The notes beneath the pieces were generated by a model, which had not been told where the DNA came from, did not search any database, and saw only the letters and a program-made list of their open reading frames with translations. From the NCBI GenBank assembly GCA_964035545.1, contig OZ037770.1, forward strand, positions 372,001 through 436,000: a stretch of DNA of 64,000 nt. The letters are read 5' to 3'. The stretch is from Bugula neritina. Its lineage: Eukaryota > Animalia > Bryozoa. The position numbers were made by a program, and so were the translations under genes. Below, piece after piece: positions 4,496 to 64,000 of the stretch (its first letter is position 1; the number at the start of each line of letters is the position of its first letter).

Positions 4496-5833
4496 TTAGT
4501 AGGTTGAGCGTTCATCTGAGGTGATGCCCGAGAGACCGCTGTAGGTACGACTCAGCTCAGACTTCTCGCTGATAACTGACATGACGTCTACAGCGTCGAA
4601 TACGCTGTGTCTGTCCCTCACCGAGCCCGACCTCGTTCTCTTCACCTCGCCTTTGATGTCTCCACTCCTGCCAAACGTCAAGTCCTCAGTGATGGTGATG
4701 AAGTCACCGTCTGAGTCTGAGTCATCGGAGTTGTGCAGACGGTCGCATACGGACTCCTTGCTTGCTGTCACAGAGTTAGACGAGATCGTCACGACTTGCT
4801 CCATCTGTTTGGGGCGTCTCAAAGTCGCCCATATTTTACGCCTTAAAGCTGGATTGAGGACGAGGAAGACAACCGGTAAAGCAATTAGACAGAGTTTGTG
4901 GAGTATAATACACGCCCTGAATATCACGTCTGGCAGGATCTCGTTACAGAAATAGTCTCCTGTCAGCTCATTGCTGCCGCACATCAGTACTAGTTGGAGA
5001 GAGGCAGCGAATGGTACGAGAGCAAGGAACAGCAGGCCAGTAATGACTACCGCCGACACTGTTCCTTGTTTCATCACTATTTTCCTCCGCATAGAGGTGT
5101 GTAGGTGACTGAGTCTGAGCTTGAGCCTGAATACTACTGCTACAGAGAACACGCTTGTCAGAGCTACAGAGAAGATGGTGAGGGCGGTGTAGACGTAAGC
5201 AAATGCATAACCATATAGTAGGTTCCTATTGCACCTGGTGTTGACGTCTGCACTGAATAGGTTGGTAGTCGGGAGGATGCTGACCACCAGCGCCATGGAG
5301 TAGGCAATGACCAGCAGACAAGCGAGTAAGTGCTTGGTCTGTCTGGTGGATAAATACTCCTTAGACTCCAGTCGTATAAGTCTCTCTACGCTCAGCATGG
5401 GTAGAGACAGCAGTATCGCTATCATGAAATAGTCTGGGGTCAGTGTCATAATCATACACAGTACGGGGTGTGTTATGCCCATCCTATCTTCCTTCATTAC
5501 CATGAGAGGAGCTCTCAGTCCGAGGTCACAGATTGCTACGAGACAAATGTTGGTGAGAATACTGATCATGACCAGACTCGCGTGTTTGGCGATTTGTTTC
5601 CTCAGAAGAAAGAGTAGCAACAGGAAGCCGCACGTCACCAACTGACCAATAGAGGAGACTATAACAGTGGCAACAGCCGGCACACTAAATGTCGTGTCAT
5701 TCAAAATGGCTGCAAACTCGTCATCCATTGTATCGGTTTGTAACTCGGTAGAGTTTAAACGGAAGAGCAGCTCACTTTCTGCCGGGGTGCTTCCTGTTGA
5801 CATCATGCCTTCATTATACAGGAAGTATGTCAT
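4496..5833 (-). CDS. Orphan rhodopsin-like (class A) GPCR, single coding exon, ~445 aa
   Basis: Seven hydrophobic segments and N-terminal N-glycosylation sequons (NST, NDT). TM3 Cys and ECL2 Cys are present, SVERL lies at the D/ERY position, and TM6 has ALVPF. TM7 LPVVFLVLNPALRR is followed by an Ser/acidic C-tail. A splice acceptor just upstream (~5878) suggests non-coding 5' exon(s). Confidence 0.85.
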   Translation of the reverse strand: MTYFLYNEGMMSTGSTPAESELLFRLNSTELQTDTMDDEFAAILNDTTFSVPAVATVIVSSIGQLVTCGFLLLLFLLRKQIAKHASLVMISILTNICLVAICDLGLRAPLMVMKEDRMGITHPVLCMIMTLTPDYFMIAILLSLPMLSVERLIRLESKEYLSTRQTKHLLACLLVIAYSMALVVSILPTTNLFSADVNTRCNRNLLYGYAFAYVYTALTIFSVALTSVFSVAVVFRLKLRLSHLHTSMRRKIVMKQGTVSAVVITGLLFLALVPFAASLQLVLMCGSNELTGDYFCNEILPDVIFRACIILHKLCLIALPVVFLVLNPALRRKIWATLRRPKQMEQVVTISSNSVTASKESVCDRLHNSDDSDSDGDFITITEDLTFGRSGDIKGEVKRTRSGSVRDRHSVFDAVDVMSVISEKSELSRTYSGLSGITSDERSTY

Positions 5834-10343: not shown

Positions 10344-13300
10344 TCATGTAGAGTCTAAGGGAGGGTAAGATAACTTCTCAACTGTACAAGAGACTAGGGG
10401 AAGATGGTCCACAACCTTGCTGGCATCAGTTATATCTGTTACAGGAATCTACAAACAAAGTGTACGGAGTTGTTCTGCCTTGTAAATATGCAACGACATG
10501 CTTCTAACTAATGGTAACAGATCTAGTGTGTTTACAAGTAATAATTGAACTACTAAAAGTAAAAAAGCTACAAAATATGCTGCGATATGATTTCTTTCAA
10601 TTCATGCGGAATATGCATTTTATTTTCATCATTTTTAAAACATATTCTCACAGCAAATTGGGGAAACAATGACTGTGAATGACTCACTCACTCACACCCA
10701 CTCACTCACGCTCACTCACGCTCACTCACTCACTCACACTCACTCACGCTCACTCACTCACTCACTCACGCTCACTCACGCACTCACTCACTCACTCACT
10801 CACTCACTCACTCACTCACTCACTCACTCACCCACCCACCCACCCACTCACTCACTCACTCACTCACTCTCTCACTGAATACTCACTCTCCCACTCACTC
10901 ACTCTCTCACTCACTCACTCACTCTCTCACTGAATACTCACGCACTCACGCACTCACTCACTCACGCTCACTCACTCACTCACTCACTCACTCACTCACT
11001 CACTCACTCACATGTATCTAACCAATCAAACAAGGAATAGAGTGAGTTACACAAGAAAGCCTGAGTTCTTAGACTCACATCTAGCTGGTGGTAGGGGCTC
11101 TCCCTGAGGCTACACTCTCTGAGGATGTAATTCTTACTATAATCACAGTATAGCCTCGTATCACGAATCCTGACCAAAACATTGTCAACTCTGAGATAAA
11201 ATCTCAACAATATGAAGTAACCAGACGCCATTGCTCTCTACAGTAACACACATTGTGGAATATAGACACGCATAATGATCTCTACATGGATATAGTATAT
11301 ACAGTACTACTCACTAGTATATACCGTATTACTCACTAGTATATACAGTATTACACACTAGTATATACAGTATTACTCACTAGTATATACAGTATTACTC
11401 ACTAGTATATACAGTATTACTCGCTAGTATATACAGTACTACTCACTAGATTATATACCGTATTACTCACTAGTATATACAGTATTACTCACTAGTATAT
11501 ACAGTATTACTCGCTAGTATATACAGTATTACTCACTAGTATATACAGTATTACTCACTAGATTATATACCGTATTACTCACTAGTATATATAGTATTAC
11601 TCGCTAGTATATACAGTATTACTCACTAGATTATATACCGTATTACTCACTAGTATATACAGTATTACTCACTAGTATATACAGTATTACTCACTAGATT
11701 ATATACCGTATTACTCACTAGTATATACAGTATTACTCGCTAGTATATACAGTATTACTCGCTAGTATATACAGTATTACACACTAGTATATACAGTATT
11801 ACTCGCTAGTATATACAGTATTACTCGCTAGTATATACAGTATTACACACTAGTATATACAGTATTACTCGCTAGTATATACAGTATTACTCGCTAGTAT
11901 ATACAGTATTACACACTAGTATATACAGTATTACTCACTAGATTATATACCGTATTACTCACTAGTATATGAAGCATTACATACTAGTATATACCGTATT
12001 ATTTACTAGTATATACAGTATTACTCACTAGTATATACAGTATTACTCACTAGTATATACCGTATTACTCACTAGTATATACCGTATTACTCACTAGTAT
12101 ATACAGTATTACTCGCTAGTATATACCGTATTACTCACTAGTATGTACAGTATTACTCACTAGTATGTACAGTATTACTCACTAGTATATACAGTATTAC
12201 TCACTACTATATACAGTATTACACACTAGTATAGACAGTATTACACACTAGTATATACAGTATTACACACTAGTATATACAATATTACTCACTAGTATAT
12301 ACAGTATTACTCGCTAGTATATACCGTATTACTCGCTAGTATATACCGTATTACTCACACACTTTAGACTGAGTATAGAAGCCCCATTATCAGCCAGCTC
12401 ATCTTCATAAAGTATCAAACTGGCGAAAAATAAAATCTTTTCTTCTATCTTCAATTTTTCATAATCAATTTTCTCAGTCGTTGGATGTACCTACAGATCA
12501 TATAATCTTCATTATATGGTAATATATATAAACTATAAAGTATAGTATGAGACAATATAATAAATATATATATTATACTGTAAGATATGTATCATAGCAT
12601 ATATTACACTATAAAATATAACATAACATAATTATTATGATAGTATAATGTATAATATCTACTGATGGATATTCAAAAACTGAAATACTTCTACTACTGA
12701 AGACGGCAGACAGTAAATGAAGTGCGCATTGCTAATTGTAGGGAAGAAAACTCCAAAGTATAAATAACCGGGTTGCTTAAACTGTTTTAGTTACTTTGCG
12801 AAACAGCCCCTAAAATGGAGACAACTCTAAAGTATGGCACATCACTACAGAGTGTACACACTGAGTGCTACTCACAGTGAAAGCTTTTTCTCCCTCATTT
12901 ATAAGAGTCCCGCTGTAGGTTGTGCTGAATGTCCAATCAAATGGCTTGAATACTTCATGAATGTGTTGACTCTCGTCTCTTGAAGTACACAAACAGATCA
13001 CGTTCTCACAAAGTTACTAACTCAACACAACTCAAATCAATGGTTGCCTGAACTTGGCACTTTTGTATTACATTACTCTACATGACTTAGTTAGCCATTA
13101 ACTTGACTTACCCAACTTGAAACTAGTTTTAGTATGAGTGCGGATGCTACTAGTACCACTGCTACTAGTACTACTAGTAGTAGGCTATTACCACTACTAG
13201 CACTATGAAAATAGACTCTCTAACTACTATTAGTAACACAATACAACATAATTTCTACCTGCTGGACTTCCATGCCTCAGCCACAGCAACTTTCATCAAG

Positions 13301-14460: not shown

Positions 14461-16318
14461 CATAAATAGTTGCTTTCAATAATTATTGTGGGCCTACTAA
14501 TAGTAACAGTAACTATTTACTAATTTAGAGTTAGTAAGTGTAACTGAGTTAGTAACTAAGTTGAAAATAAAAATATCTTCAAATTCAAGTTGGAGTTTAA
14601 GTTAAACTTAAAAACTAAAGTATTGATTGTCATTAAATGTAACTTATTATGAATATTTACTTCCATTAATCTACGACTCATAGTCATAGATATTATAAGT
14701 ATAACTATATACTTCAGGAATATTAACTACGTAATTTCATGGCCAGTAGCCTATTGACTCAGTTGTTTCTTAATCTGAAAGTGAAGTAATATAAATCAAT
14801 TTGGAGCTTGACTTCAAGTCAGAGTCAATAGTTGAAATTATTGTAAACTTAAAGCTAAAACTTCTGCATCAATTTCTACTTGAACTTGTTAAAAATTAAA
14901 GTATTATTTTGGAAGCAACTACTCTAACTTAAAATAACAAGCCAATAGATTTACATTGTATCTATTAATTCTAGAAGATTTATAACCCCCACTCCTTTCA
15001 TTGAAAAGGTGGACACTAGAAGTTTGCTAGACTCTATTTCCTTGCTTAGAGTTGGTCAGTGGTTGGTAGGAGCTTCCGATACCACTCGTACTCGTGGTAA
15101 AAGTTCCAGGTAAGATTTTAACTAAAATTGATTTCTTAATGCTTAAAAAGATAATTTTTATCTCTTGCGGACTCTTGTATTTTAACATTAAGAAAGGGCT
15201 TTTCAGTTCCTAAATAAAATTTTCTGCTGACATTTGTATGTGTACAATTAACAATGAGTTAATAGAACACTGCTGGAGTGAATTCACAACAATCTAGTTA
15301 AAATATAATTATTACTCTATACTCTATAGTCTGTACACTTACAATTATTGAACTTCTCTATAGTCTGTATGTTAAACTAGTTGCATTTCACAATATCTTT
15401 GATAAACAATATTCAGATGGAATGACATTTTTGTAATTACAATGCTAGTTACCACACTGAACCGCCCTTTTTAGTCTTTTCTCTGTCAGTATCTTATTTG
15501 AAACATTCAGATAAACTGTCAGAAGTTACCCTCTCCCTGTATATTAACTGAATGAATAGGTATTATTAGACACAGTCATACTAAATAGAGAACATAGAGC
15601 TAGTAATAGACAAGGTTGAACATAAGTGAAGCTATTATTGACAATTTTTATCTAATAACAACTCACTTGCCTGTTTCCTGTTTCCCAATCGACTAAAGAT
15701 TAAACTCCATTTGGTGCTAACATACTCTCACTTTGCAGATTAATTAGCAGAAGTTACCTCCTCCTGTAGTCTACTAACATCTCTTCTACTGAACTGACAT
15801 ACAATTATACATTTCAAAGGAGATAATGTGTATTTATTAGTACAGGTATGAGTGCGTGAAATAACTACCTAATAAATCAAAGTAAAGTATATGGCTTACA
15901 AAGCTATACAAGTGTTGTTATATTATGGTTGTTGTTATTGTTGTTGTTATGAATGTTTATCAATTTGTTTTAGTTTGGGTTGAACTGACAGATACAGGAG
16001 CTACTGTACACTTCATTTCTATGCTGTATTGAAATCTTATCAGGTAAAGAACAGGTAAATAATTGAATAAACTATTGACATTGTGTAACATTATAGATCA
16101 TATCTTTTTTTACATTCTTGTAATTGCCTGCGATATCTCCTGGTCCACTTTTTTTTATTATGTATTCTCATTATTATACAGCTTTAGATTGGGTTAAACT
16201 GACATATTCAAGTAATACTCACCCTATATCATTAGGTTTGGAAGTGTGATATATAAATCTATTGTGTAGGCCAGTATCAGTTCTATTTAATATTATCAGA
16301 TGTGATTCATATCACAAC

Positions 16319-19300
16319 ATGGAGGACTACACTAATATATTAAAGTTAGAAGAGCTGACCATAGAATACCAAAAGAAGGCTGAAACTAGTAGAAACTGGG
16401 TGCACCATCTACAGGTATAGTTTGTTGCTATTTTAGTTAAACAGTTGTTTAGCTATCATAAACATGATATGACATAACATGAAAGTTTATTAGAAGGGTT
16501 AAAACTAACTACAGAGGAGCATGTATGTTGTTGAAGTCGAAGACCAGCTGAAGACAAATTAGACATGTGTATTTTTCTAATGAGTTTATAGGAAGTACAT
16601 TTTATTATTCTGAATAACGACTGCATATTGCTCAGCTTGAAAAAACTGCATCATCCTTGATCTGTAGGCTCATGGACTAGCTAACAGATGTCTGGCTCTA
16701 GAGTTCAGTGAGGAGAGACAGAGGAGAGTCTACCAGATAGAAGACTGTTGGTACGAACGAAGACATCCACTCAGCTATGAGGAACATCAGGAATTGACAA
16801 AGAAACATCTCAAGCTACTGGAGGACTACAGAACTGAGACAACAACTGACTTCAGCTCTATTGACACAAGTAACTTGAAACTTGATAACTATCCTTCAGC
16901 TAATCAGCTCACTGAGTTTAGTAATTCTGTATTTGAATTAAGTCAAAAGTGCAGTGATAACTTTATATCAACATGTAGTAAGTTTATACAGTCCAGTGTT
17001 GATACTTTGAGTACATCAGGTTTAAATATTCCCTGTTCATTTGCTGTGATTGGTCTTGGTTCTGTTGCTCGTGGTACAGCCACTCCATATTCTGACCTAG
17101 AGTATGCCTTTGTCGTTGAGTCAGACTCTCATATTGACTACTTTACTAAACTAGCAGTTGATAGCTACTTTAGAATTGGTAATATGGGAGAGTCACCATT
17201 GAAGGGTTTTAATATTCCTGAACTAGACAAATCATACACAGATAGTGCTACTGTAGGGTTCCGTATTGATGGAATATCCACAAATGCTGGAAATATTCCC
17301 ACAGGGAAAGGAGATGGTAGCAGGGGTTTGATATTGACTGTTGAACAGTTGACTGAACTATACTCTGAGACACTGACTACACCAGCTGGTGATATAGCAG
17401 ATATAGCTGATCTGTTATCTTCTATTGTCATGATATGTGCATATGAAAATGGTGAAATTCTGTTTGACAACACTCTTGAAAACTTTCAAACTATTTTAGC
17501 AGAAAATGTAAACAATTCAGTTGTGATAAACAAACGACTGAAATTATTAAAAACAGATGCTGAATCTTACAATTTTCTCCCAACCTTCAAATCCTTTGGA
17601 CCTCCTGACAACACAAAACTCAAACTTAAAGGTGATATTTTTCGATACCCAACACTGTTAGTTGACCACCTGAGACTGTTGATAGCTTTAGATAAAATGA
17701 CTCCTTGGTCTATAATATGCCACTTGAAAGAGCAGAACTTTGTGACTGACAAACAACTGTTTAGACTAAACCTAATAACAGCTATGGCCATATACATCAG
17801 AACAACTGCATACTTACAATCAGGAACTCAAAAAGATCATTTCTCTTTATATCCTCCCACTGAATGTCACACCAAAGGAATTTATCATTTATCTAGAGAC
17901 ATGTTTGTTCTATTAGCATTTATGATTGTTCCTGTGAAGAAATTTGTTAAAAGAAACTTGAATAATATTAATTGTGAAAGTGAATGGATAGGCTCTGCTG
18001 TTTTGAGAAGACTAGTGAACCAAATTGGTTTAGATAACCCAGGTTTCACATTGAAAATGGAGGTGGAATTTTTTTGTGGAGATTTTGAGCAATCCATTCA
18101 AACTGTTAAAGCAAATTGTGGTGCTGATATATTTGATAAAAATCCTAAAGATTTTGGTGAAACAATCAACAGTTCATATTATTCAGACTCTTTAGTTGCA
18201 TCTCAGGATTTTGAGCATGGAGACAATAATGTGTTAACCGCTCAACTCAAATACATTGAAATGGCTGCATATCTATTGTACTCCTCTAGAAAGTATGATA
18301 GTTGTCTTAAGTATTTTACTTGGTTAGCAGAAAACTGTGTAAAGTCTGCATCTGATAGGTTGAAATGGAAAGTGTTAGCTGCTGACTCCGCCAATCAGCT
18401 TCACAATTACCATGACGTCTTCTCTTTGATTGGTGAAGTTTTGTGTACCATTAGATCAAAGTACAAACTAAAGAATAATCAAACTCTGTACAGATTTGTG
18501 AGAGACCAGGCTAAACACGATCAGCATTCAGCTGAAGACAGAGAGTTGTTTGAAATTGTTGCACAAGCTTTAAGAGTGACTAGCAAAGCTTATGAGAATG
18601 TAAAACATTATGTGCAAGCTGAAGAGTTGGCAAATGCAGCACTCTCACTTTTTGATAGTCTGTATTCCCAAAGGTCAGGGCAGCAATTTGGCAGTCATTA
18701 TGTAGATTTGATAGTTTCCCTTGCTTTGCTACAGTCAGAAAGAGGTGAACATGATGAAGGTGTTGAATACTTGACTCATCATTTAGATAAGTTAAAAGAA
18801 GTTCACACTGACCAGACTAACCACCCAGACATTGCCCTTCTACTGAGTGGTTTAGGTCAACTTTATGAAAAAGCTGAAAATTATGACATCTCCTTAGATT
18901 TCTATAACAGAGCTTTAGCTATGACAAAAAGTTTGTACAGTTTGGATCATGTTGATGTTGCTCAGTGCTATCGGAGAGTTGCAGCTCTACAGGCTGAAAT
19001 AGGTGATTATAATTTATCTTGCAGCAACTATCAAATTGTAGAAAGGTTGTTTGATAAGTTGAAGGTTAATGAGCATGAGAAAGCTGGTCTGTTAGTAGAA
19101 ATTGGTCTTCTTCATTGCTGTAAGAGTGAATATGACTCAGCTCTGTCATATCTTGATTTAGCTCTCAGTATGATAGAGTCTAAAGTAGAAACCATCCACA
19201 TAGATATGGCAGATATAAACTCTGCATATGGTAGAGTTTATAGTAAAATGGGACAAACAGAACTTGCATTAGAATATTACACAAAGTCTCTAGAAATAAC

Positions 19301-22300
19301 CAAAGAAGTTCTGAGTAGTATTGATGGTATTCCATTGTTATCTCAACTCTATGGTGAGATGGGAAAGTTGTCTGTCGAACTGAGCGCAGAGGCTATGATG
19401 TTGAATATTGAGAGAGCTAGTAGAGAGGTGAACAGTGTTAGTCCTGATGTAGCTTCTTGTTATATGAGAGTTGGTAATGTCTATAGAGATATGTGTCTGT
19501 ATGAGCAGTCTTTGCTGTACCTCAATGAGGCATGTGAAATGTTCAGGGCTGTCTATGGCAGTGATGCAGTGCATGCAGATATTGCTAGTAGTTATAACAA
19601 TATTGGTCTTGTGTATAGTGACATGGGTGAATATAGCAAAGCACTAGAGTACTATAGGAAGAGTCTTGAGATGAGACAAGCTGTGTATGGCAGTGATGCA
19701 GTACATGCAGACATTGCTAGCAGTTATAACAATATTGGTAATGTGTATAGTAACATGGGTGAATATAGCAAGGCACTAGAGTACTATAGGAAGAGTCTAG
19801 AGATGCTGTTAGCTGTCTATGGTAATGATGCAGTACATGCAGACATTGCTGGTAGTTATACCAATATTGGTATTGTGTATGGTAACATGGGTGAATATAG
19901 CAAGGCACTAGAGTACTATAGGAAGGGTCTAGAGATGAAACAAGCTGTCTATGGCAGTGATGCAGTGCATGCAGACATTGCTAATAGTTATAACAATATT
20001 GGTGCTGTGTATAGTAACATGGGTGAATATAGCAAGGCACTAGAGTACTATAGGAAGGGTCTAGAGATGCAGCTAGCTGTCTATGGCAGTAAGGCTACAC
20101 ATGCACACATTGCTAGTAGTTATAACAGTATTGGTAGTGTGTATAGTAACATGGGTGAATATAGCAAGGCAATAGAGTACTATAGGAAGGGTCTAGAGAT
20201 GAGACAAGCTGTCTATGGCAGTGATGCAGTGCATGCAGACATTGCTAGTAGTTATAACAATATTGGTATTGTGTATAGTGACATGGGTGAATATAGCAAG
20301 GCAATAGAGTACTATAGGAAGGGTCTAGAGATGAGACAAGCTGTCTATGGCAGTGATGCAGTGCATGCAGACATTGCTAGTAGTTATAACAATATTGGTA
20401 GTGTGTATAGTGACATGGGTGAATATAGCAAGGCACTAGAGTACTATAGGAAGGGTCTAGAAATGAGACAAGCTGTCTATGGCAGTGATGCAGTGCATGC
20501 ACACATAGCTAGTAGTTATAACAGTATTGGTAATGTGTATATTAACATGGGTGAACATTGCAAGGCACTAGAGTACTATAGGAAGGGTCTAGAGATGAGA
20601 CAAGCTGTCTATGGCAGTGAGGCTACACATGCAAACACTGCTGGTAGTTATAACAATATTGGTATTGTGTATAGTAACATGGGTGAATATAGCAAGGCAC
20701 TAGAGTACTATATGAGAGGTCTAGAGATGGAGCTAGCTGTCTATGGCAGTGATGCAGTACATGCAGACATTGCTAATAGTTATAACAATATTGGTATTGT
20801 GTATAGTGACATGGGTGAATATAGCAAGGCACTAGAGTACTATAGGAAGAGTCTTGAGATGAGACAAGCTGTGTATGGCAGTGATGCAGTACATGCAGAC
20901 ATTGCTAGCAGTTATAACAATATTGGTATTGTGTATAATCACATGGGTGAATATAGCAAGGCACTAGAGTACTATAGGAAGGGTCTAGAGATGAGACAAG
21001 CTGTCTATGGCAGTGATGCAGTGCATGCAGATATTGCTAGCAGTTATAACAATATTGGTAATGTGTATAGTAACATGGGTGAATATAGCAAGGCACTAGA
21101 GTACTATAGGAAGAGTCTTGAGATGAGACAAGCTGTCTATGGCAGTGATGCAGTGCATGCACACATTGCTTGTAGTTATAACAATATTGGTGGTGTGTAT
21201 TGTAACATGGGTAAATATAGCAAGGCACTAGAGTACCATAGGAAGAGTCTAGAGATGAGACAAGCTGTCTATGGCAGTGATGCAGTACATGCAGACATTG
21301 CTAGTAGTTATACCAGTATTGGTAGTGTGAATAGTAAGATGGGTGAATATAGCAAGGCACTAGAGTACTATGAGAAGGGTCTAGAGATGAGACAAGCTGC
21401 CTATGGCAGTGATGCAGTGCATGCAGATATTGCTAGTTGTTATACCAATATTGGTAGTGTGTATAGTTACATGGGTGAATATAGCAAGGCACTAGGGTAC
21501 CATAGGAAGAGTCTAGAGATGGTGCTAGCTGTCTATGGCAGTGATGCAGCACATGCCCACATTGCTGGTAGTTATAACAATATTGGTAATGTGTATAGTG
21601 ACATGGGTGAATATAGCAAGGCACTAGAGTACTATAGGAAGGGCCTAGAGATGAGACAAGCTGTCTATGGCAGTGATGGAGTGCATGCACACATTGCTGG
21701 TAGTTATACCAATATTGGTGGTGTGTATAGTAACATGGGTGAATATAGCAAGGCACTAGAGTACCATAGGAAGAGTCTAGAGATGCAGCTAGCTGTCTAT
21801 GGCAGTGATGCAGTGCATGCAGACATTGCTAGTAGTTATAACAATATTGGTGGTGTGTATAGTAACATGGGTGAATATAGCAAGGCACTAGAGTACCATA
21901 GGAAGGGTCTAGAGATGCAGCTAGCTGTCTATGGCAGTGATGCAGTGCATGCAGACATTGCTAGTAGTTATAACAATATTGGTTTTGTGTATAGTAACAT
22001 GGGTGAATATAGCAAGGCACTAGAGTACTATAGGAAGGGTCTAGAGATGAGACAAGACGTCTATGGCAGTGATGCAGTGCATGCACACATTGCTGGTAGT
22101 TATAACAATATTGGTAATGTGTATAGTGACATGGGTGAATATAGCAGGGCACTAGAGTACTATAGGAAGGGTCTAGAGATGAAACAAGCTGTCTATGGCA
22201 GTGATGCAGTGCATGCAGACGTTTCTAGTAGTTATTACAATATTGGTGTTGTGTATAGTAACATTGGAGAATATAGCAAGGCACTAGAGTACTATAGGAA

Positions 22301-23471
22301 GGGTCTAGAGATGCAGTTAGCTGTCTATGGCAGTGATGCAGTGCATGCCCACATTGCTGGTGGTTATAACAATATTGGTGGTGTGTATAGTAACATGGGT
22401 GAATATAGCAAGGCACTAGAGTACTATAGGAAGAGTCTAGAGATGCAGCTAGCTGTCTATGGCAGTGATGCAGTGCATTCAGACCTTGCTAGTAGTTATA
22501 ACAATATTGGTATTGTGTATAAATACATGGGTGAATACAGCAAGGCACTAGAGTACTATGGGAAGAGTCTAGAGATGAGACAAGCTGTCTATGACAGTGA
22601 TGCAGTGCATGCACACATTGCTAGTAGTTATAACAACATAGCCTCAGTTCATCACAAACTCTCAGACTACACCTCATCCCTCCATTACTATAGCAAAAGC
22701 ATAGACATGCATAAAGCAGTCTATGGTGAAGGAACCAATCATAATAACATTGCTGAAAGTTATAGAGGTATTGCTGATGTGTACACAGATACAGGTGAAT
22801 ATACAAAGTCACTACATTATCTCACCTTGTCTCTAGACATGACTAAAGCTATACATGGTGACAATACCACTCACATAGATATAGCAGACACTTACCATAA
22901 ACTGGGTAGACTGTATCATAATGCAGGTCAATATACACACTCAGTACACTGCTATAACATGGCCCTTGTAGAGAGAGATAGGTGTAATACTGCTCATCTC
23001 CCTCTATATACAGCTGTGTTAGTCAGTCTCTCTCAGACTGTAATCTCATCATCAGACTACAAACACGCTAAGGGTCTCCTACTACTCGCTCTCAAACATT
23101 CACCTACTGACTACTGTAAGGATACTCGGGCTAATATCTGTCAACTCTTAGGACAGTGTTGTCTCCACTTACATCAGTACAGAAAGTGTTGGAAATATTT
23201 ATATTCAGCTCTCTGTTACTATGAGTCACTTCCTTCCTCCAACTGGAAGATGAAATCTCTAGCTCAGGTTCATTTGTACATCTCCCACTTGCTCTTACAT
23301 CTGGGTCATGTTTCACAGGCTATAGAACACTCTGAGTTAGCTTTTGATTTTGTAGAAAGTGTTTTAGTTGACAGAGATAACATAACTCCTGAATTTACTA
23401 GACTGTATACAGACATTACACACATGATTCTTGGTTTATATTCAACTCTTACTCTGTATATAGATATATAG
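16319..23471 (+). CDS. Nucleotidyltransferase (DUF294/GlnD-like, Pol-beta fold)-TPR array protein, copy 1, intact, 2299 aa
   Basis: Coding exon 1 is 16319-16414 (MEDYTNILKLEEL...WVHHLQ, GT donor). Exon 2 is 16668-23471 (AG acceptor, in frame with ORF 16794..23471). The NTase motif FAVIGLGSVARGTATPYSDLEYAFV is at ~17040-17115, with a candidate third Asp in FRID (17268-17270) and a helical DUF294_C-like segment at ~17620-17820. Degenerate TPRs follow, then 23 near-identical 44-aa TPR units and degenerate C-terminal TPRs. Confidence 0.9.
19548..22583 (+). repeat. Coding 132-bp tandem repeat, 23 units (AVYGSDAVHADIASSYNNIGxVYSxMGEYSKALEYYRKxLEMxx)
   Basis: (22584-19548)/132 = 23 exactly; there are no indels between units. 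Confidence 0.95.
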
Positions 23472-27269: not shown

Positions 27270-28185
27270 TAGTATTACATTATACTCTATACAGTATTAC
27301 ACTATACTCTATACTCTATACAGTATTACACTCTACTCTATACAGTACTACACTATACCCTATACAGTATTACACTATACTATATACAGTATTACACCAT
27401 ACTCTATACAGTATTACACTATACTCTATACAGTATTACACTATACTCTATACAGTATTACACTATACTCAATACAGTATTACACTATACTCAATACAGT
27501 ATTACACTATACTCTATACAGTGTTACACTATACTCTATACAGTGTTACACTATACTCTATACAGTATTACACTATACTCTATACAGTATTACACTATAC
27601 TCTATACAGTGTTACACTATACTCTATACAGTATTACACTATTTTCTATACAGTATTACACTATACTCTATACAGTATTACACTATACTCTATACAGTAT
27701 TACACTATACTCTATACAGTATTACACTATACTCTATACAGTATTACACTTTACTCTATACAGTATTACACTATACTCTATACAGTATTACACTATACTC
27801 TATACAGTATTACACTATACTCTATACAGTATTACACTATACTCTATACAGTATTACACTATACTCTATACAGTATTACACTATACTCTATACAGTATTA
27901 CACTCTACTCTATACAGCATGACACTATACACTATACAGTATTACACTATACTCTATACAGTATTACACTATACTCTATACAGTATTACACTATACTCTA
28001 TACAGTATTACACTATACTCTATATAGTATTACACTATACACTATACAGTATTACACTATACTCTATACAGTATTACACTATACTCTATACAGTATTACA
28101 CTATACTCTATATAGTATTACACTCTACTCTATACAGTATTACACTATACTCTATATAGTATTACACTCTACTCTATACAGTATA
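27270..28185. repeat. 22-bp minisatellite (TATACAGTATTACACTATACTC)n, roughly 41 units
   Basis: Direct periodicity; it is the source of spurious ORFs 27521-28197. Confidence 0.95.
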
Positions 28186-31936: not shown

Positions 31937-34900
31937 ATGGAGGACTACAAAGACATATTAAAGTTAGACGAACTGACCATAAAATACCAAAAAATGGCGG
32001 AGTCTAGTAGAAACTGGGTGCACCATCTGCAGGTAGCAATTACTACTATTTGATTCAAATTAATGGTGTACCTGTCATAAACATGATATGACATAACATA
32101 AAATGTTCATAGAAGGTTTAAAACTAAATACAGAAAAGCATGTCTGTTGTTGAAGTTGAAGACTGCAGCTGAAGACAAAGACATATGTATTTTTCTAATG
32201 AGTTTATAGGAAGTATACATTTTATTATTCTGAATGAGGACTGCATTTTGCTCAGCTTGAAAAAACTGTATTTTCTTTTTTATCTATAGGCTCATGGACT
32301 AGCTAACAGATGTCTGGCTCTAGAGTTTAGTGAAGAGAGACAGAGGAGAGTCTACCAGATAGAAGACTGTTGGTATGGAGGAAGACATCCAATCAGCTAT
32401 GAGGAACATCAGAAATTGACAAAGAAACATCTCAAGTTGCTGGAGGATTTTAGAGACGAGACAACAACTGACTTCAGCTCTCTTGACACAAGTAACTTGA
32501 AACTTGATAACTATCCTTCAGCTAGTCAGCTCACTGAGTTTAGTAATTCTGTATTTGAATTAAGTCAAAAGTGCAGTGATAACTTTATATCAACATGTAG
32601 TAAGTTTATACAGTCCAGTGTTGATACTTTGAGTACATCAGGTCTAAATATTCCCTGTTCCTTTGCTGTGATTGGTCTTGGTTCTGTTGCTCGTGGTACA
32701 GCCACTCCATATTCTGACCTAGAGTATGCCTTTGTCGTTGAGTCAGACTCTCATATTGACTACTTTACTAAACTAGCAGTTGATAGCTACTTTAGAATTG
32801 GTAATATGGGGGAATCACCATTGAAGAGTTTTAATATTCCTGAAATAGACAAATCATATGCAGATAGTGCTACTGTAGGCTTCCGTATTGATGGAATATC
32901 CAAAAATGCTGGAAACATTCCAACCGGGAAAGGAGATAGTAGCAGGGGTTTGATATTGACTGTAGAACAATTGACTGAACTATACTCTGAGACACTGACT
33001 TTACCAGCTGGTGATATAGCAGATATAGCTGATCTGTTATCTTCTATTGTCATGATCTGTGCATATGAAAATGGTAAAATGCTGTTTGACAAGACTCTTG
33101 AAAACTTTCAAACTATTTTAGCAGAAAATGTGAACAATTCAGTTGTGATAAACAAACGACTGAAATTATTAAAAACAGATGCTGAATCTTACAATTTTCT
33201 CCCAACATTCAAATCCTTTGGACCTCCTGACAATACAAAACTCAAAGTTAAAGGTGATATTTTTCGATACCCAACACTGTTAGTTGACCACCTGAGACTG
33301 TTGATAGCTTTAGATAAAATGACTCCTTGGTCTATAACATGCCACTTGAAAGAGCAGAACTATGTGACTGACAAACAACTGTTTAGACTAAACCTGATAA
33401 CAGCTCTGGCCATATACATCAGAACAACTGCATACCTACAATCAAGAACTCAAAAAGATCATTTCTCTTTATATCCTCCCACTGAATGCCACACCAAAGG
33501 AATTTATCATTTATCTAGAAACATGTTTGTTCTATTAGCATTTCTGATTGTTCCTGTGAAGAAATTTGTTAAAAGAAACTTGGATAATTTTAATTGTGAA
33601 AGTGAATGGATAGGCTCTGCTGTTTTGAGAAGACTAGTGAACCAAGTTGGTTTAGATAACCCAGGTTTCACATTGAAAATGGAGGTTGAATTTTTTTGTG
33701 GAGATTTTGAGCAATCCATTCAAACTGCTAAAGCAAATTGTGGTGCTGACATATTTGATAAAAGTCCTAAAGACTTTAGTGAAACTATCCGTAGTTCAAG
33801 TGATTCCAATTCCTCAGTTACATCTGAATATTGTAAACAGGAAGTTAATAATGTTTCTGCTGCTTCATCCAAATACATCGAAATGGCTGCATATCTATTG
33901 TACTCCTCTAGAAAGTATGATAGCTGTCTGAAGTATTTCACTTAGTTAACAGAAAACTGTGCAGACTCTGCATCTGATAGGTTAAAATGGAAAGTGTTAG
34001 CAGCTGACTCAGCCAATCAGATTCACAATTATTATGAGGTCTTCTCTTTGATTGGTGAAGTTTTGTATACCATCAGATCAAAGTACAAATTGAAGATTAG
34101 TCAAACTCTGTACAGATTTGTTAGAGATCAGGCTAAACACACTCAGCATTCAGCTGAAGACAGAGAGCTGTTTGAAATTGTTGCACAAGCTTTTAGAGTG
34201 ACTAGCAAAGCCTACAAGAATGTGAAGCATTATGTGCAAACTGAAGAGTTGGCAAATGCAGCACTCTCACTTTTTGACAGTCTGTATTCCCAAAGATCTG
34301 GGGAACAATTTGGCAGTCATTATGTAGATTTGATAGTTTCCCTTGCGTTGTTACAGTCAGAAAGAGGTGAACATGATAAAGGTGTTGAATATTTGACTCA
34401 TCATTTAGATAAGTTGAGAGAAATTCACACTGACCAGACTAACCACCCAGACATTGCCCTTCTATTGAGTGGTTTAGGTCAACTTCATGAAAAAGCTGAG
34501 AATTATGACATCTCCTTAGATTTTTACAACAGAGCTTTAGCTATGACAAAAAGTTTGTACAGTTCAAATCATGTTGATATTGCTCAATGTTATCAGAAAA
34601 TTGCAGCTGTGCATGCAAAAATGGGTGATTATAGTTCATCTTTCAGCAACTATCAAAGTGTAGAAAAGTTGTTTGAGAGTTTGAAGATTAGTGAGCATGA
34701 GAAAGCTTTTCTGTTGGTGGAAATTGGCCTTCTTCATTGTTGTAAGAGTGAATATGACTCAGCTCTGTCATATCTTGATTCAGCTCTCAGTATGATAGAG
34801 TCTAAAGTAGAGACCACCCACATAGATATGGCAGATATAAACTCTGCATATGGTAGAGTTTATAGTGAAATGGGGCAGACAGAACTTGCATTAGAATATC

Positions 34901-36981
34901 ACACAAAGTCTTTAGTGACAACCGTAAAAGTTCTGAGTAGTATTGATGGTATTCCATTGTTATCTCAACTCCATGGTGAGATGGGAAAGTTGTCTGTGAA
35001 ACTGAGTGCAGAGGCTATGATGTTGAATATTGAGAGAGCTAGTAGAGAGGTGAACAGTGTTAGTCCTGGTGTAGCCTCTTGTTACATGAGAGTTGGTAAT
35101 GTCTATGATGATATGTGTCTATATGAGCAGTCTTTGGTGTATCTCAATAAGGCATGTGAGATGTTCAAGGCTGTCTATGGCAGTGATGCAGTGCATGCAC
35201 ACATTGCTATTGGTTATAACAATATTGGTAATGTGTATAGTAAGATGGGTGAATATAGCAAGGCACTAGAGTACTATAGGAAGGGTCTAGAGATGCAGCT
35301 AGCTGTCTATGGCAGTGATGCAGTGCATGCCCACATTGCTAGTAGTTATAACAATATTGGTAATGTGTATAGTAACATGGGTGAATATAGCAAGGCACTA
35401 GAGTACTATGAGAAGGGTCTAGAGATAGAGCTAGCTGTCTATGGCAGTGATGCAGTGCATGCACACATTGCTAGTAGTTATAACAATATTGGTGTTGTGT
35501 ATAGTAACATGGGTGAATATAGCAAGGCACTAGAGTACTATAGGAAGGGTCTAGAGATGAGACAAGCTGTCTATGGCAGTGATGCAGTGCATGCAGCCAT
35601 TGCTAGTTATTATACCAATATTGGTAGTGTGTATAGTGACATGGGTGAACATAGCAAGGCACTAGAGTACTATAACAAGGGTTTAGAGATGCAGTTAGCT
35701 GTCTATGGCAGTGATGCAGTGCATGCCCACATTGCTAGTAGTTATAACAATATTGGTAATTCGTATAGTGACATGGGTGAATATAGCAAGGCACTAGAGT
35801 ACTATGAGAAGGGTCTAGAGATAGAGCTAGCTGTCTATGGCAGTGATGCAGTGCATGCCCACATTGCTAGTAGTTATAACAATATTGGTAATGTGTATAG
35901 TAAAATGGGTGAATATAGCAAGGCACTAGAGTACTATAGGAGGGGTCTAGAGATGAGACAAGCTGTCTATGGCAGTGATGCAGTGCATGCAGACATTGCT
36001 AATAGTTATACCAATATTGGTGTTGTGTATAGTAACATGGGTGAATATAGCAAGGCACTAGAGTACTATAGAAAGGGTCTAGAGATGCAGCTAGCTGTCT
36101 ATGGCAGTGATGCAGTGCATGCACACATCGCTAATAGTTATAACAACTTAGCCTCAGTTCATCACAAACTCTCAGCCTACACCTCATCCCTCCACTACTA
36201 TACCAAATGTATAGAGATGTTTAAAGCAGTCTATGGTGAAGGAACCAACCATAATCACATTGCTTTTTGTTATAGAGGTATTGCTGATGTGTACACAGAT
36301 ACAGGTGAATATATAAAGTCACTACATTATCTCACCTTGTCTCTAGACATGACTAAAGCTATACATGGTGACAATACCACTCACATATATCTAGCAGACA
36401 CTTACCATAAACTGGGTAGACTGTATCATAACACAGGTCAATATACACACTCAGTACACTGCTATAACATGGCCCTGGTACAGAGAGATAGGTGTAATAC
36501 TGCTCATCTCCCTCTATATACAGCTGTGTTAGTCAGTCTCTCTCAGACTCTAATCTCATCATCAGTCTACAAACACGCTAAGGGTCTCCTACTACTCGCT
36601 CTCAAACATTCACCTACTGACTACTGTAAGGATACTCAGGCTAATATCTGTCAACTCTTAGGACAGTGTTGTCTCCACTTACATCAGTACAGGAAGTGTT
36701 GGAAATATTTATATTCAGCTCTCTGTTACTATGAGTCACTTCCTTCCTCCAACTTGAAGATGAAATCTCTAGCTCAGGTTCATTTGTACATCTCCTACTT
36801 GCTCTTACATCTGGGTCATGTTTCACTGGCTGTAGAACACTCTGAGTTAGCTTTAGTTCTTGTAGAAAGTGTTTTAGTTGACAGAGATAACATAACTCTT
36901 GAACTCACTAGACTGTATACAGACATTACACACATGACTCTTGGTTTATATTCAACTCTTACTCTGTATACAGATATTTAG
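31937..36981 (+). pseudogene. NTase-TPR copy 2: colinear paralog with 7 core TPR units and one in-frame nonsense codon (583-aa NTase-only product, or 1595 aa if read through)
   Basis: Exon 1 is 31937-32032 and exon 2 is 32290-36981. ORFs 32416..33945 and 33994..36981 are in the same frame. TAG at 33943-33945 aligns to TGG (Trp) in copies 1 and 3. The length difference to copy 1 is exactly 16 x 44 aa, and the NTase motif is intact. Confidence 0.85.
35170..36093 (+). repeat. Coding 132-bp TPR tandem repeat, 7 units
   Basis: (36094-35170)/132 = 7. Confidence 0.95.
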
Positions 36982-60629: not shown

Positions 60630-60809
60630 ATGGGCTATTATAATTATGCCGATAAACGAGATACTACACTCAGACTGCCCTGTTATAGTACTATGATTGG
60701 CTACTGCAAAATTTTTGCCGATAGACAACATTTATTTATGATGTAATGTATCTCGTATTGGTACATAAGTGTTATGTCTGAGGACGAGATACTGTGAAAT
60801 TATGCCCTG
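60630..60809 (-). mobile_element. Probable hAT-like DNA transposon terminus abutting truncated copy 3
   Basis: The segment ends ...AATTATGCCCTG (reverse complement CAGGGCATAATT) exactly at the homology breakpoint. The subterminal motif ACGAGATAC is repeated (~60656, ~60748 inverted, ~60784). No clean matching second end was found. Confidence 0.45.
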
Positions 60810-63800
60810 ATAATATGCCACTTGAAAGAGCAGAACTATGTGACTGACAAACAATTGTTTAGACTAAACCTAATAACAGCTATGGCCATATACATCAGAA
60901 CAACTGCATACTTACAATCAGGGACTCAAAAAGATCATTTCTCTTTATATCCTCCCACTGAATGCCACACCAAAGGAATTTATCATTTATCTAGAAACAT
61001 GTTTGTTCTATTAGCATTTCTCATTGTTCCTGTGAAGAAATCTTTTAAGAAAAACATGAATTATATTCATTGTGAAAGTAAATGGATAGGCTCTGCTGTT
61101 TTGGGAAACCTTGTGAACCAAGTTGGTTTAGATAACCCAGGTTTCACATTGAAAATGGAGGTGGAATTTTTTTGTGGAGATTTTGAGCAGTCTATACAAA
61201 CTGTTAAAGCAAATTGTGGTGCTGATATATTTGATAAAAATCCTAAAGATTTTGGTGAAACAATCAACAGTTCATATTATTCAGACTCTTTAGTTGCATC
61301 TCAGGGTTTTGAGCATGAAGACAATAATGTGATAACCGCTCAACTCAAATACATTGAAATGGCTGCATATCTATTGTACTCCTCTAGAAAGTATGGTAGT
61401 TGTCTTAAGTATTTTACTTGGTTAGCAGAAAACTGTGTAGACTCTGCATCTGATAGGTTGAAATGGAAAGTGTTAGCAGCTGACTCAGCCAATCAGCTTC
61501 ACAATTACCACGAGGTCTTCTCTTTGATTGGTGAAGTTTTTTCTACCATCAGATCAAAGTACAAATTAAAGATTAATCAAACTCTGTACAGATTTGTGAG
61601 AGACCAGGCTAAACAGGATCAGCATTCAGCTGAAGACAGAGAGTTGTTCAAAATTGTTGCACAAGCATTAAGAGTGACTAGCAAAGCTTATGAGAATGTT
61701 AAACATTATGTGCAAGCTGAAGAGTTGGCAAATGCAGCACTAGCACTATTTGACAGTCTGTATTCCCAAAGATCTGGGCAACAATTTGGCAGTCATTATG
61801 TAGATTTGATAGTTTCCCTTGCTTTGTTACAGTCAGAAAGAGGTGAACATGATGAAGGTGTTGAGTATTTGACTCATCATTTAGATATGTTAGTAGAAGT
61901 TCACACTGACCATACTAACCACCCAGACATTGCCCTTCTACTGAGTGGTTTAGGTCAACTCTATGAAAAAGCTAATAATTATGACACCTCCTTAGATTTT
62001 TACAACAAAGCTTTAGCTATGACAAAAAGTTTGTACAGTTCAAATCATGTTGATATTGCTCAATGTTATCAGAGAATTGCAGATCTGCATGCAAAAATGG
62101 GTGATTATAGGTCATCTTTCAGCAACTATCAAAGTGTAGAAAATTTGTTTGAGAGTTTGAAGATTAGTGAGCATGAGAAAGCTTCTCGGTTGGTGGAAAT
62201 TGGTCTTCTTCATTGCTGTAAGAGTGAATATGACTCAGCTCTGTCAAAGCTTGACTCAGCTCTCAGTATGATAGAGTCTAAAATAGAGACCACCCACATA
62301 CATATGGCAGATATAAACTCTGCATATGGTAGAGTTTATAGTGAAATGGGGCAGACAGAACTTGCATTGGAATATCACACAAAGTCTCTAGAAATAATCA
62401 AAGAAATTATGAGTAGTATTGATGGTATTCCATTGTTTTCTCAACTCCATGGTGAGATGGGAAAGTTATCTGTAAAACTGAGTGCAAAGGCTATGATGTT
62501 GAATATTAAGAGAGCTAGTAGAGAGGTGAACAGTGTTAGTACTGATGTAGCTTTTTGTTACATGAGAGTTGGTAATGTCTATAGAGATATGTGTCTACAT
62601 GAGCAGTCTTTGCTGTATCTAACTAAGGCATGTGAGATGTTCAGAGCTGTCTATGGCAGTGATGCAGTGCATGCAGACATTGCTAGTAGTTATAACAATA
62701 TTGGTAGTGTGTATAGTGACATGGGTGAATATAGCAAGGCACTAGAGTACTATAGGAAGGGTCTAGAGATGCAACTAGCTGTCTATGGCAGTGATGCAGT
62801 GCATGCAGACATTGCTAGTAGCTATAACAATATTGGTAATGTGTATAGTGACATGGGTGAATATAGCAAGGCACTAGAGTTCTATAGGAAGGGTCTAGAG
62901 ATGAGACAAGCTGTCTATGGCAGTGATGCAGTGCATGCACACATTGCTAGTAGTTATAACAATATTGGTAATGTGTATAGTGACCTGGGTGAATATAGCA
63001 AGGCACTAGAGTACTATAGGAATAGTCTAGAGATGAAGCTAGCTGTCTATGACAGTGATGCAGTGCATGCAGACATAGCTAGTAGTTATAACAATATTGG
63101 TAGTGTGTATAGTGACATGGGTGAATATAGCAAGGCACTAGAGTACTATAGGAAGGGTCTAGAAATGCAGCTAGCTGTCCATGACAGTGATGCAGTGCAT
63201 GCAGACATAGCTAGTAGTTATAACAATATTGGTATTGTGTATAGATACATGGGTGAATATAGCAAGGCACTAGAGTACTATAGGAAGGGTCTAGAAATGC
63301 AGCTAGCTGTCCATGACAGTGATGCAGTGCATGCAGACATAGCTAGTAGTTATAACAATATTGGTATTGTGTATAGTGACATGGGTGAATATAGCAAGGC
63401 ACTAGAGTACTATAGGAAGGGTCTAGAGATGCAACTAGCTGTCTATGGCAGTGATGCAGTGCATGCCCACATTGCTAGTAGTTATAACAATATTGCTGGT
63501 GTGTATAGTGACATGGGTGAATATAGCAAGGCACTAGAGTACTATAGGAAAGGTCTAGAGATGAGACAAGCTGTCTATGGCAGTGATGCAGTGCATGCAG
63601 ACATTGCTAGTAGTTATAACAATATTGGTGGTGTGTATAGTGACATGGGTGAATATAGCAAGGCACTAGAGTACTATAGGAAAGGTCTAGAGATGAGACA
63701 AGCTGTCTATGGCAGTGAGGCTACACATGCACACATTGCTAGTAGTTATAACAGTATTGGTAGTGTGTATAGTAACATGGGTGAATATAGCAAGGCACTA

Positions 63801-64000
63801 GAGTACTATAGGAAAGGTCTAGAGATGAGACAAGCTGTCTATGGCAGTGATGCAGTGCATGCAGACATTGCTAGTAGTTATAACAACATTGGTGTTGTGT
63901 ATCAAAACATGGGTGAATATAGCAAGGCACTAGAGTACTATAGGAAGCGTCTAGAGATGCAGCTAGCTCTCTATGGCAGTGATGCAGTGCACCCACACAT
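60810..64000 (+). pseudogene. NTase-TPR copy 3: 5'-truncated (no NTase), open frame running off the window end, >=10 core TPR units
   Basis: Homology to copy 1 starts abruptly at 60810 (= 17712, codon ~381). There is an in-frame TGA upstream at 60795 and the first ATG is at 60882. The offset to the array start is identical to copy 1 (1836 nt). 132-bp units run from 62646 to 63965 and continue. The ORF track omits this frame, apparently because it reaches no stop in the window. Confidence 0.85.

Follow-up and report, generated by a model that had tools for sequence, protein, structure and literature searches.

Introduction

Near-identical repeats that carry hypervariable ligand-facing residues mark fast-diversifying receptors, such as the NOD-like receptors (NLRs) of fungi, the variable lymphocyte receptors (VLRs) of lampreys and the leucine-rich repeats (LRRs) of plant NLRs. 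Here we describe gene A, a gene of the bryozoan Bugula neritina that contains an array of tetratricopeptide repeats (TPRs), and the family to which it belongs. The gene lies in a stretch of 64,000 nucleotides, positions 372001-436000 of contig C6 (OZ037770.1, assembly GCA_964035545.1, of 216 Mb), which we call the window. What sets this case apart is the occurrence of this pattern in an animal TPR family, one of about 40 or more genes, and in partnership with a domain predicted to be a nucleotidyltransferase of the DrrA/GlnE type.

The closest precedent is given by the TPR domains of fungal NLRs, such as Podospora Pa_2_10340 (Dyrka et al. 2014, PMC4986451). The repeats of these proteins are of the kinesin light chain (KLC) type and have been modelled on KLC2; they share more than 85% internal identity and vary in number, they evolve in concert within and between paralogues, their selected or polymorphic sites lie on the concave face, and the genes form large clustered families (PMC4986451). 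Highly conserved internal repeats are found in only 0.8% of metazoan repeat proteins (Dyrka et al., PMC4986451). The known metazoan AMPylases are FICD and SelO (PMC8097203); the DrrA/GlnE-type enzyme class is known from bacteria and stands outside those described in metazoans. The immunity and allorecognition genes of the bryozoan host are essentially undescribed, and a literature search, whose limited coverage makes it no proof of novelty, returned no description of a nucleotidyltransferase-TPR family or of bryozoan TPR receptor expansions.

An earlier reading of the letters of the window, below called the original prediction, had proposed that variation among the TPR units of gene A is non-synonymous and concentrated on the ligand-binding face, that it reflects diversifying selection against a background of concerted evolution, and that it amounts to a modular recognition code. 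We find it likely that the array is the diversified ligand-recognition solenoid of a spliced nucleotidyltransferase-TPR protein, with a homogenised scaffold and a groove under selection.

The repeat array and its variable positions

Tandem Repeats Finder reports a period of 132 nt over 19548-22636, with 23.4 copies, 90% matches and 0% indels, and translation agrees with it on the 23 near-identical, in-frame TPR units that had been predicted. Their mean pairwise nucleotide identity is 90.6%, above the mark of about 85% set by highly conserved repeats of the fungal NLR type. Pfam assigns TPR_10 (E 1.9e-244) and TPR_12 (E 1.2e-243) to 21-24 stretches of gene A, above the curated cut-off. Measured against the reference signature W4/L7/G8/Y11/A20/F24/A27/P32, with a stacking helix-turn-helix per unit, the units have Y4, I7, G8, Y11, A20, Y24 and G/S27; P32 is replaced by Q/L, and there is a 10-residue extension as in KLC. 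The TPR numbering of the original prediction (A1, Y4, G8, X9, Y11, G15, Y17, A20) was borne out by hidden Markov model (HMM) alignment to the designed consensus TPR structures 9qhc and 8bu0. With this numbering the hypervariable unit positions 11, 14, 17, 18, 21, 24 and 25 are TPR -2, 2, 5, 6, 9, 12 and 13, and unit position 43 is TPR31.

Translation of the 23 units bears out, residue by residue, what had been listed for six of these positions. TPR9 takes L, N, I, A, S, G, F and V through the codons CTT, AAT, ATT, GCT, AGT, GGT, TTT and GTT, in which the third base T is fixed; TPR2 takes S/G/N/C, TPR5-6 take NN/TN/NS/TS/YN, and TPR12-13 take SD/SN/GN/IN/NH/CN/SK/SY/KY. The scaffold is, as proposed, nearly fixed over the 40 units of the three copies of the gene in the window (Y4 in 40/40, G8 in 39/40, G15 in 40/40, Y17 in 38/40, A20 in 40/40). 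Variation is concentrated beyond chance: TPR 2, 5, 6, 9, 12 and 13 hold 40% of the amino-acid entropy in gene A against 14% expected (p = 8e-5 for six random positions), and in gene A alone the non-synonymous diversity (pN) at these positions is 1.9 times the global synonymous diversity (pS), compared with 0.5 elsewhere. The list of six was right in what it named and incomplete in what it left out, namely TPR -2, which prolongs the stripe of variable sites on helix A, TPR31 and a milder variation in helix B. Some of the named sites are matched in variability by unit position 11 (TPR -2, D/H/N), TPR31-32 (RQ/QL/KQ/EL and others), TPR27 (G/S) and TPR25.

Some of this variation is dimorphic, with D/H at TPR -2, G/S at TPR27 and RQ or QL at TPR31-32 (unit positions 11, 39 and 43-44). 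These dimorphisms suggest that exchange has shuffled together at least two types of ancestral unit; strict alternation of the types along the array of gene A was not seen.

Diversifying selection in three subfamilies of paralogues

On the 40 units of the window, a minimum-event count gives at least 25 non-synonymous and 3 synonymous changes at the named codons (N:S 25:3) and 54:19 elsewhere. The changes at the named codons are thus largely non-synonymous, as had been claimed, but the contrast with the other codons is not significant at this low power (Fisher p = 0.11), and data from the wider family were needed; there the contrast is significant. A genome search with the non-repeat N-terminal 874 residues of gene A found about 39 near-full-length loci and additional fragments, clustered on contigs C6, C5 and C7. 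From the paralogue loci L001-L030 we sampled about the first ten units per array, which gave 206 units in three sets, all paralogue subfamilies of one genome. Set 1 holds 112 units from 11 close paralogues, whose N-terminal regions share 81-92% identity with that of gene A; set 2 holds 49 units from a subfamily 53% identical to gene A, and set 3 holds 45 units from a subfamily 32% identical to it.

The same unit positions, 11, 14, 17, 21, 24, 25 and 43, have the highest entropy in all three sets, while high entropy at positions 18, 36 and 37 differs from set to set; the entropy profiles correlate across the sets with rho 0.38-0.69, and Watersipora proteins have the same top-entropy positions as the Bugula sets. 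This recurrence bears on the fear that mis-assembled or collapsed repeats have yielded chimeric units. Arrays with a period of 132 nt and units 91% identical are indeed hard to assemble, yet the frame of gene A is intact through 2225 codons, with no indels, and the site pattern is found again at about 20 further loci, in the independent metagenome-derived proteins P0001-P0006 and in another genus, so that we regard an artefact of assembly as scarcely credible.

Pairwise diversity was measured without a tree, and recombination therefore does not bias it. In the three sets, pN of the helix-A stripe (TPR -2/2/5/6/9/12/13) is 1.7-3.1 times the global pS; at position 9 it is 3.1-3.5 times, and in the scaffold 0.29-0.55 times. 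In a held-out test, disjoint pairs of units were picked on half of the scaffold codons and pS was taken from the other half. Under this pairing the ratio omega of the stripe is 1.65, 2.78 and 2.73 in sets 1-3 (worst-replicate p = 6e-4), that of position 9 is 3.2-4.9 and that of the held-out scaffold 0.27-0.38; the helix-B group is marginal, with omega 1.2-1.9. Random pairing gives a stripe pN/pS of 1.7-3.0. Held-out and random pairing took the place of sister pairs picked on all scaffold codons, which were discarded since such a choice lowers pS by construction. Parsimony counts on FastTree trees, which recombination may inflate, were used for ranking sites. Those past the Bonferroni threshold are unit positions 21 and 25 in set 1; 11, 14, 21, 24, 25, 36 and 43 in set 2; and 11, 14, 17, 21, 24, 36 and 43 in set 3. 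Positive selection at the interaction-surface positions of the repeat was thus found in each of the three sets. The N-terminal region of the same paralogues has omega 0.34, and this value together with that of the scaffold indicates that the genes are under constraint.

One might ask whether nothing more than an absence of constraint on the groove residues (omega about 1) is at work, on a scaffold that is constrained and homogenised, with no diversifying selection at all. Surface positions are the most variable in all TPR proteins (PMC1261162), and the minimum-event omega on the 40 units of the window is about 1.35 and not significant, as relaxed constraint would have it. However, under unbiased pairing pN of the stripe is 1.65-3.0 times pS in three subfamilies (p <= 6e-4) and three to five times at position 9, and neutral homogenisation would erase non-synonymous and synonymous differences equally; we judge relaxed constraint alone to be unlikely. 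Diversifying selection on the groove-lining face, acting against a family-wide homogenisation, is well supported, and in this the original prediction holds.

Nor does mutation offer an easy substitute for selection. In set 1 the local pS of the hypervariable codons is 0.15, against a global 0.14, so their third bases are not hypermutated, which argues against a local mutational hotspot. Targeted mutagenesis into AAY/AGY codons, either adenine-directed as in a diversity-generating retroelement (DGR) or deaminase-like, would be suggested by codons that are mostly AAT/AAC/AGT and change in their first two bases with the third fixed, a superficially DGR-like picture. Yet the adenines of the scaffold rank with the least variable bases of all, with 2.3-3.2% non-consensus letters; many A-rich codons are invariant, and in the hypervariable codons it is G, rather than A, that varies the more. 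The window showed neither a template repeat nor a reverse transcriptase, and the variation is germline variation between paralogues. We hold such a mechanism to be very improbable, and the identification of the array as a DGR target was rejected, as its variation is not confined to adenines.

Homogenisation of the scaffold

In their scaffold, units of one gene lie at a nucleotide distance of 0.051 and units of different genes at one of 0.055, and most units have their nearest neighbour in another gene. Synonymous divergence between units is likewise 0.14 both within and between genes, compared with a pS of 0.23 in the flanking N-terminal unique region of the same paralogues. The lower value in the units, beside a flank that evolves at omega 0.34, points to a homogenisation that extends across the family in genes that are still under purifying selection, and agrees with the concerted evolution that had been proposed. 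Complete arrays seen in paralogues have 5, 7, 9, 9 and 23 units. At either end they carry divergent cap units, themselves conserved from one paralogue to another, and this is the edge pattern expected from unequal exchange.

Structure of the array and mapping of the groove

AlphaFold2 (AF2) models the cap unit and nine array units with a predicted local distance difference test (pLDDT) score of 86.6 and two helices per unit, helix A at unit positions 6-25 and helix B at 29-45. The best solved fold matches of the model are consensus TPR, OGT and LGN/Pins superhelices, with a TM-score of up to 0.82 (LGN); the LGN superhelix holds peptides in a channel, and LGN TPRs form hetero-oligomers. The hypervariable positions of helix A (11, 14, 17/18, 21, 24/25) are spaced by 3-4 residues, and the helical moment of entropy in helix A is significant and has a common direction in all three sets (309-317 degrees, p = 0.002-0.017). 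In helix B the moment is not significant in sets 1-3, and no single variable face emerges.

In TPRs generally, positions 2, 5, 9, 12, 13, 33 and 34 are the most variable and lie on the concave face, and HOP binds its ligands through TPR 2, 5, 6, 9, 12 and 13 (Magliery and Regan, PMC1261162). The closest natural solved sequence relative of the array is the TPR domain of KLC1 (E 1e-23). We mapped the KLC1 residues that contact JIP1 and TorsinA peptides (PMC6214655) to the unit by sequence alignment, and the residue letters agree at each step: K340 falls on unit position 14; N259, N301 and N343 on 17; N302, N344 and N386 on 18; V305 and L347 on 21; L348 on 22; R266 on 24; K309 and N351 on 25; Y313 on 29; and R327 on 43. 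Of the nine sites that vary most in a set, six are among these nine contact positions, and this is so in each set (p = 8e-4); TPR31 is by this mapping also a ligand-contact position in this type of TPR. By alignment, then, the hypervariable sites match the ligand-contact positions of KLC1-peptide complexes, and the named sites those of both HOP and KLC1, consistent with the ligand-binding face on which the original prediction had placed them.

Asn at TPR6 (unit position 18) occurs in about 73-80% of units in the first and third subfamilies and is the commonest residue in the second, with variable neighbours; this pattern resembles the backbone-binding Asn ladder of KLC1.

The variable face might instead be an internal or self-assembly interface, which co-evolves with the protein's own nucleotidyltransferase domain or with paralogous partners. 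There are examples of both kinds, since KLC TPRs hold an intramolecular LFP-acidic segment (PMC6214655) and LGN TPRs hetero-oligomerise, and a foreign ligand of the array is putative. Against this, ordinary purifying selection acts on the N-terminal region (omega 0.34), where no matching hypervariability is seen, and the fact that nearly every one of the 112 units of set 1 has a different combination is hard to fit to a single conserved partner; we consider an internal interface improbable. The same count speaks against the proposed modular recognition code, with 103 distinct combinations of eight sites in 112 units and none seen more than twice. A discrete code of one repeat per ligand unit, like that of TALE, PPR or PUF proteins, was rejected, as there is no small set of recurrent combinations.

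Architecture of gene A and its nucleotidyltransferase domain

The features of gene A and of its two further copies in the window are given in Table 1. The listed open reading frame (ORF) of gene A runs from 16794 to 23471 on the forward strand (2225 codons) and has the array inside it. RNA-labelled contigs from runs X2, X3 and X6, of three studies, join 16412-16414 to 16666-16668 across GT..AG, and the joined frame reads MEDYTNILK...HHLQ and then, beyond the joint, AHGL..., in parallel with the start of the Bugula protein P0019. These contigs are assembled ones accepted at 90% likeness or more, so that the splicing and transcription they record are those of the family. Further joints lie upstream (16051 to 16297 across GT..AG, 15102 to 15967/8, and 15105 to 15737) and suggest an extra 5' exon or exons, or alternative first exons, before the exon with the ATG, in 15102-16297.

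Table 1. Coordinates of gene A, its parts and its further copies within the window
Feature	Position	Strand	Basis or remark
First coding exon of gene A	16319..16414	+	ATG at 16319; exon begins at about 16297
Intron, 253 nt, GT..AG	16415..16667	+	contig joint and splice sites read in the sequence
Single large coding exon of gene A	16668..23471	+	open frame from 16668
Predicted DrrA/GlnE-like (DUF294-type) nucleotidyltransferase domain, motif G89-X11-D101-X-E103	16794..18233	+	AF2, Foldseek, profile
Helical linker with degenerate TPRs that are not homogenised, among them the N-terminal cap unit at 19416-19547	18234..19547	+	Pfam TPR_12/TPR_10
TPR array, 23 highly conserved units of 132 nt / 44 aa	19548..22583	+	Tandem Repeats Finder, translation
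Divergent C-terminal cap TPR units (starts 22584, 22716, 22848) and helical tail to the stop	22584..23471	+	
Copy B	31937..36981	+	exon structure of gene A; 7 homogenised units at 35170-36093
Copy C	60798..64000	+	10 or more homogenised units, beginning at 62646; continues past the end of the window

Upstream of the array, units -1 to -4 are conserved across gene A and copies B and C. Downstream of it, the cap units A24 and A25 match B08 and B09 of copy B and the C-terminus of P0002, not the homogenised units. From the nucleotidyltransferase domain up to the array the protein is helical/TPR, and Pfam gives no NACHT or NB-ARC match across the 2225 aa of gene A. No signal peptide is apparent by eye at the N-terminus. 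The closest named relatives of the protein come from the bryozoans Watersipora subatra and Bugula neritina.

The N-terminal 480 residues, modelled by AF2 with 24 homologues, reach a pLDDT of 81.7 and a predicted TM-score (pTM) of 0.86. Foldseek matches this model to DrrA (6yx5_B, bound to Rab8a; E 5.2e-8, probability 1.00) and to both adenylyltransferase domains of GlnE (E 4e-7 to 5e-6; 1v4a 4.4e-7, 3k7d 3e-6, probability 1.00), with TM-scores that are moderate, 0.40-0.54, and a sequence identity of 11-17%. The catalytic motif of this enzyme class is defined as G-X11-[DE]-X-[DE] (PMC8097203), and a corresponding G89...D101-L-E103 (G-X11-D-X-E) is invariant in 24 members of the family. A family profile searched against the Protein Data Bank (PDB) matches DrrA across the motif (E 0.011), where ATEYSDLD of DrrA aligns with TPYSDLE of the family. 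D159, also invariant, is a candidate third metal-binding carboxylate. Pfam scores DUF294 on gene A at 19.9 bits, with a cut-off of 21; the relatives P0008, P0029 and P0037 carry PF03445, and Atlas leads to DUF294/SidM_N clusters have a score of 0.88, below the reliable level. The N-terminal domain is thus predicted to have a DrrA/GlnE-type fold, an assignment that is weak at the level of sequence and rests mainly on the modelled fold.

P0057 and Atlas clusters include DUF294-type nucleotidyltransferase proteins, some with TPRs, from Branchiostoma and other chordate-labelled clusters, and the nucleotidyltransferase-TPR architecture may be wider than bryozoans.

Other copies and features of the window

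In copy B the Trp codon of gene A is replaced, in frame, by TAG at 33943-33945 (YFTW to YFT*). With just 7 homogenised units, this copy gives the impression of a pseudogene of recent origin, though a sequencing error may instead explain the stop. The likeness of copy C to gene A starts only at residue 307; residues 1-306, with the nucleotidyltransferase core, and the first exon were not found upstream of it in the window, and it is a 5'-truncated or TPR-only copy. Tandem Repeats Finder reports the shorter arrays of the 132-nt unit in these copies at 35170-36146 and 62645-63991. Defective copies of this kind might be a source of repeat variants for exchange.

Between the copies there are long satellite arrays, at 2048-2764 (a 19-mer x 39), 10682-11011 ((ACTC)n x 81), 11293-12358 (a 22-mer x 48) and 27271-28184 (a 22-mer x 41). 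On the reverse strand, a 445-aa ORF at 4496-5833 has a sub-threshold match to the rhodopsin-type seven-transmembrane (7TM) family (E 0.009, 15.9 bits, cut-off 30.5) and may encode a divergent G-protein-coupled receptor (GPCR).

Discussion

We propose that the 23-unit array would be the solenoid by which a spliced and apparently cytosolic protein binds its ligand. Gene conversion and unequal crossing-over, both inside one gene and from paralogue to paralogue, would keep the units about 91% identical and change their number, while selection would maintain and renew diversity on the helix-A stripe (TPR -2, 2, 5, 9, 12, 13) and at TPR31, which are expected to line the concave channel. By analogy with KLC1, an extended peptide is probably held by its backbone through the Asn that most units keep at TPR6, and the hypervariable neighbours of this Asn would read the ligand's side chains. 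The array most likely presents a diversified surface for the recognition of protein ligands that vary and are probably non-self, and it would target or regulate the N-terminal DrrA/GlnE-like nucleotidyltransferase.

Several points weigh against this reading. Most paralogue arrays are represented by their first ten or so units, the N:S contrast on the units of the window is not significant (p = 0.11), and, of the three copies that the window holds, two are defective. The units are paralogous repeats rather than alleles, and recurrent positive selection and long-term balancing of old variants are inseparable in them. The evidence of expression comes from assembled contigs and is that of the family, not of a given paralogue. 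That the sites face the groove is read from alignment to solved complexes and from helical phase, not from coordinates, and the variation in helix B (TPR24, 27, 28) falls at packing positions and misfits a purely groove-directed model. The peptide ligand, the active enzyme and the immune or allorecognition role are themselves deduced.

The most likely role, as we infer it, is that of an immune or allorecognition receptor-enzyme, and the family points to a lineage-specific system of recognition and modification in a colonial animal. More speculatively, and with decidedly less confidence than we have in the recognition solenoid itself, bryozoans and perhaps further invertebrates, amphioxus for one, may practise an intracellular non-self recognition in which the germline-diversified TPR solenoid captures variable foreign or allogeneic proteins and the fused enzyme nucleotidylylates them or signals, an NLR-like logic without a nucleotide-binding oligomerisation domain (NOD), with defective copies as repeat donors. 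The analysis also yields exact targets for mutation (unit positions 11, 14, 17, 21, 24, 25 and 43) and a natural library of TPR binding surfaces.

Comparison with known systems

In the KLC1 complexes with JIP1 and TorsinA the peptide is contacted by residues that correspond to unit positions 14, 17, 18, 21, 24, 25 and 43, and there Asn binds the backbone (PMC6214655). KLC, however, has six diverged repeats, one conserved function and no hypervariability, whereas gene A has 23 homogenised repeats. With DrrA (SidM, of Legionella) and GlnE, gene A is predicted to share the fold and the G-X11-[DE]-X-[DE] motif; it differs from them in being an animal protein, in its fusion to TPRs and in an identity of only 11-17%. 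FICD/HYPE resembles gene A in that its TPRs are implicated in the recruitment of targets to a nucleotidyl-transferring enzyme, but it has an unrelated Fic fold and two TPRs, and is single-copy, anchored in the endoplasmic reticulum (ER) and not hypervariable.

Closer in evolutionary behaviour are the TPR receptors of fungi and brown algae. The NB-ARC-TPR genes of Ectocarpus (Zambounis et al. 2012, PMC3341825) likewise form a clustered family with TPR modules of the 42-residue type and signs of positive selection, although the signal is weak for the TPRs (PMC3341825); there each TPR is a separate, shuffled exon and the partner is NB-ARC, whereas in gene A the whole array lies in one exon. The NLRs of the Podospora type share with gene A near-identical units of the KLC type, concerted evolution, variation on the concave face and clustered families, and repeat number, which differs between alleles there, differs between paralogues here. 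What sets gene A apart from the fungal NLRs is its animal host, its lack of NACHT/NB-ARC, its DrrA/GlnE-like nucleotidyltransferase partner and a unit of 44 aa compared with 42. Gene A works like the fungal and brown-algal TPR receptors, but it stands outside that family, as an animal protein that has no NOD and carries instead an enzyme of the DrrA/GlnE type.

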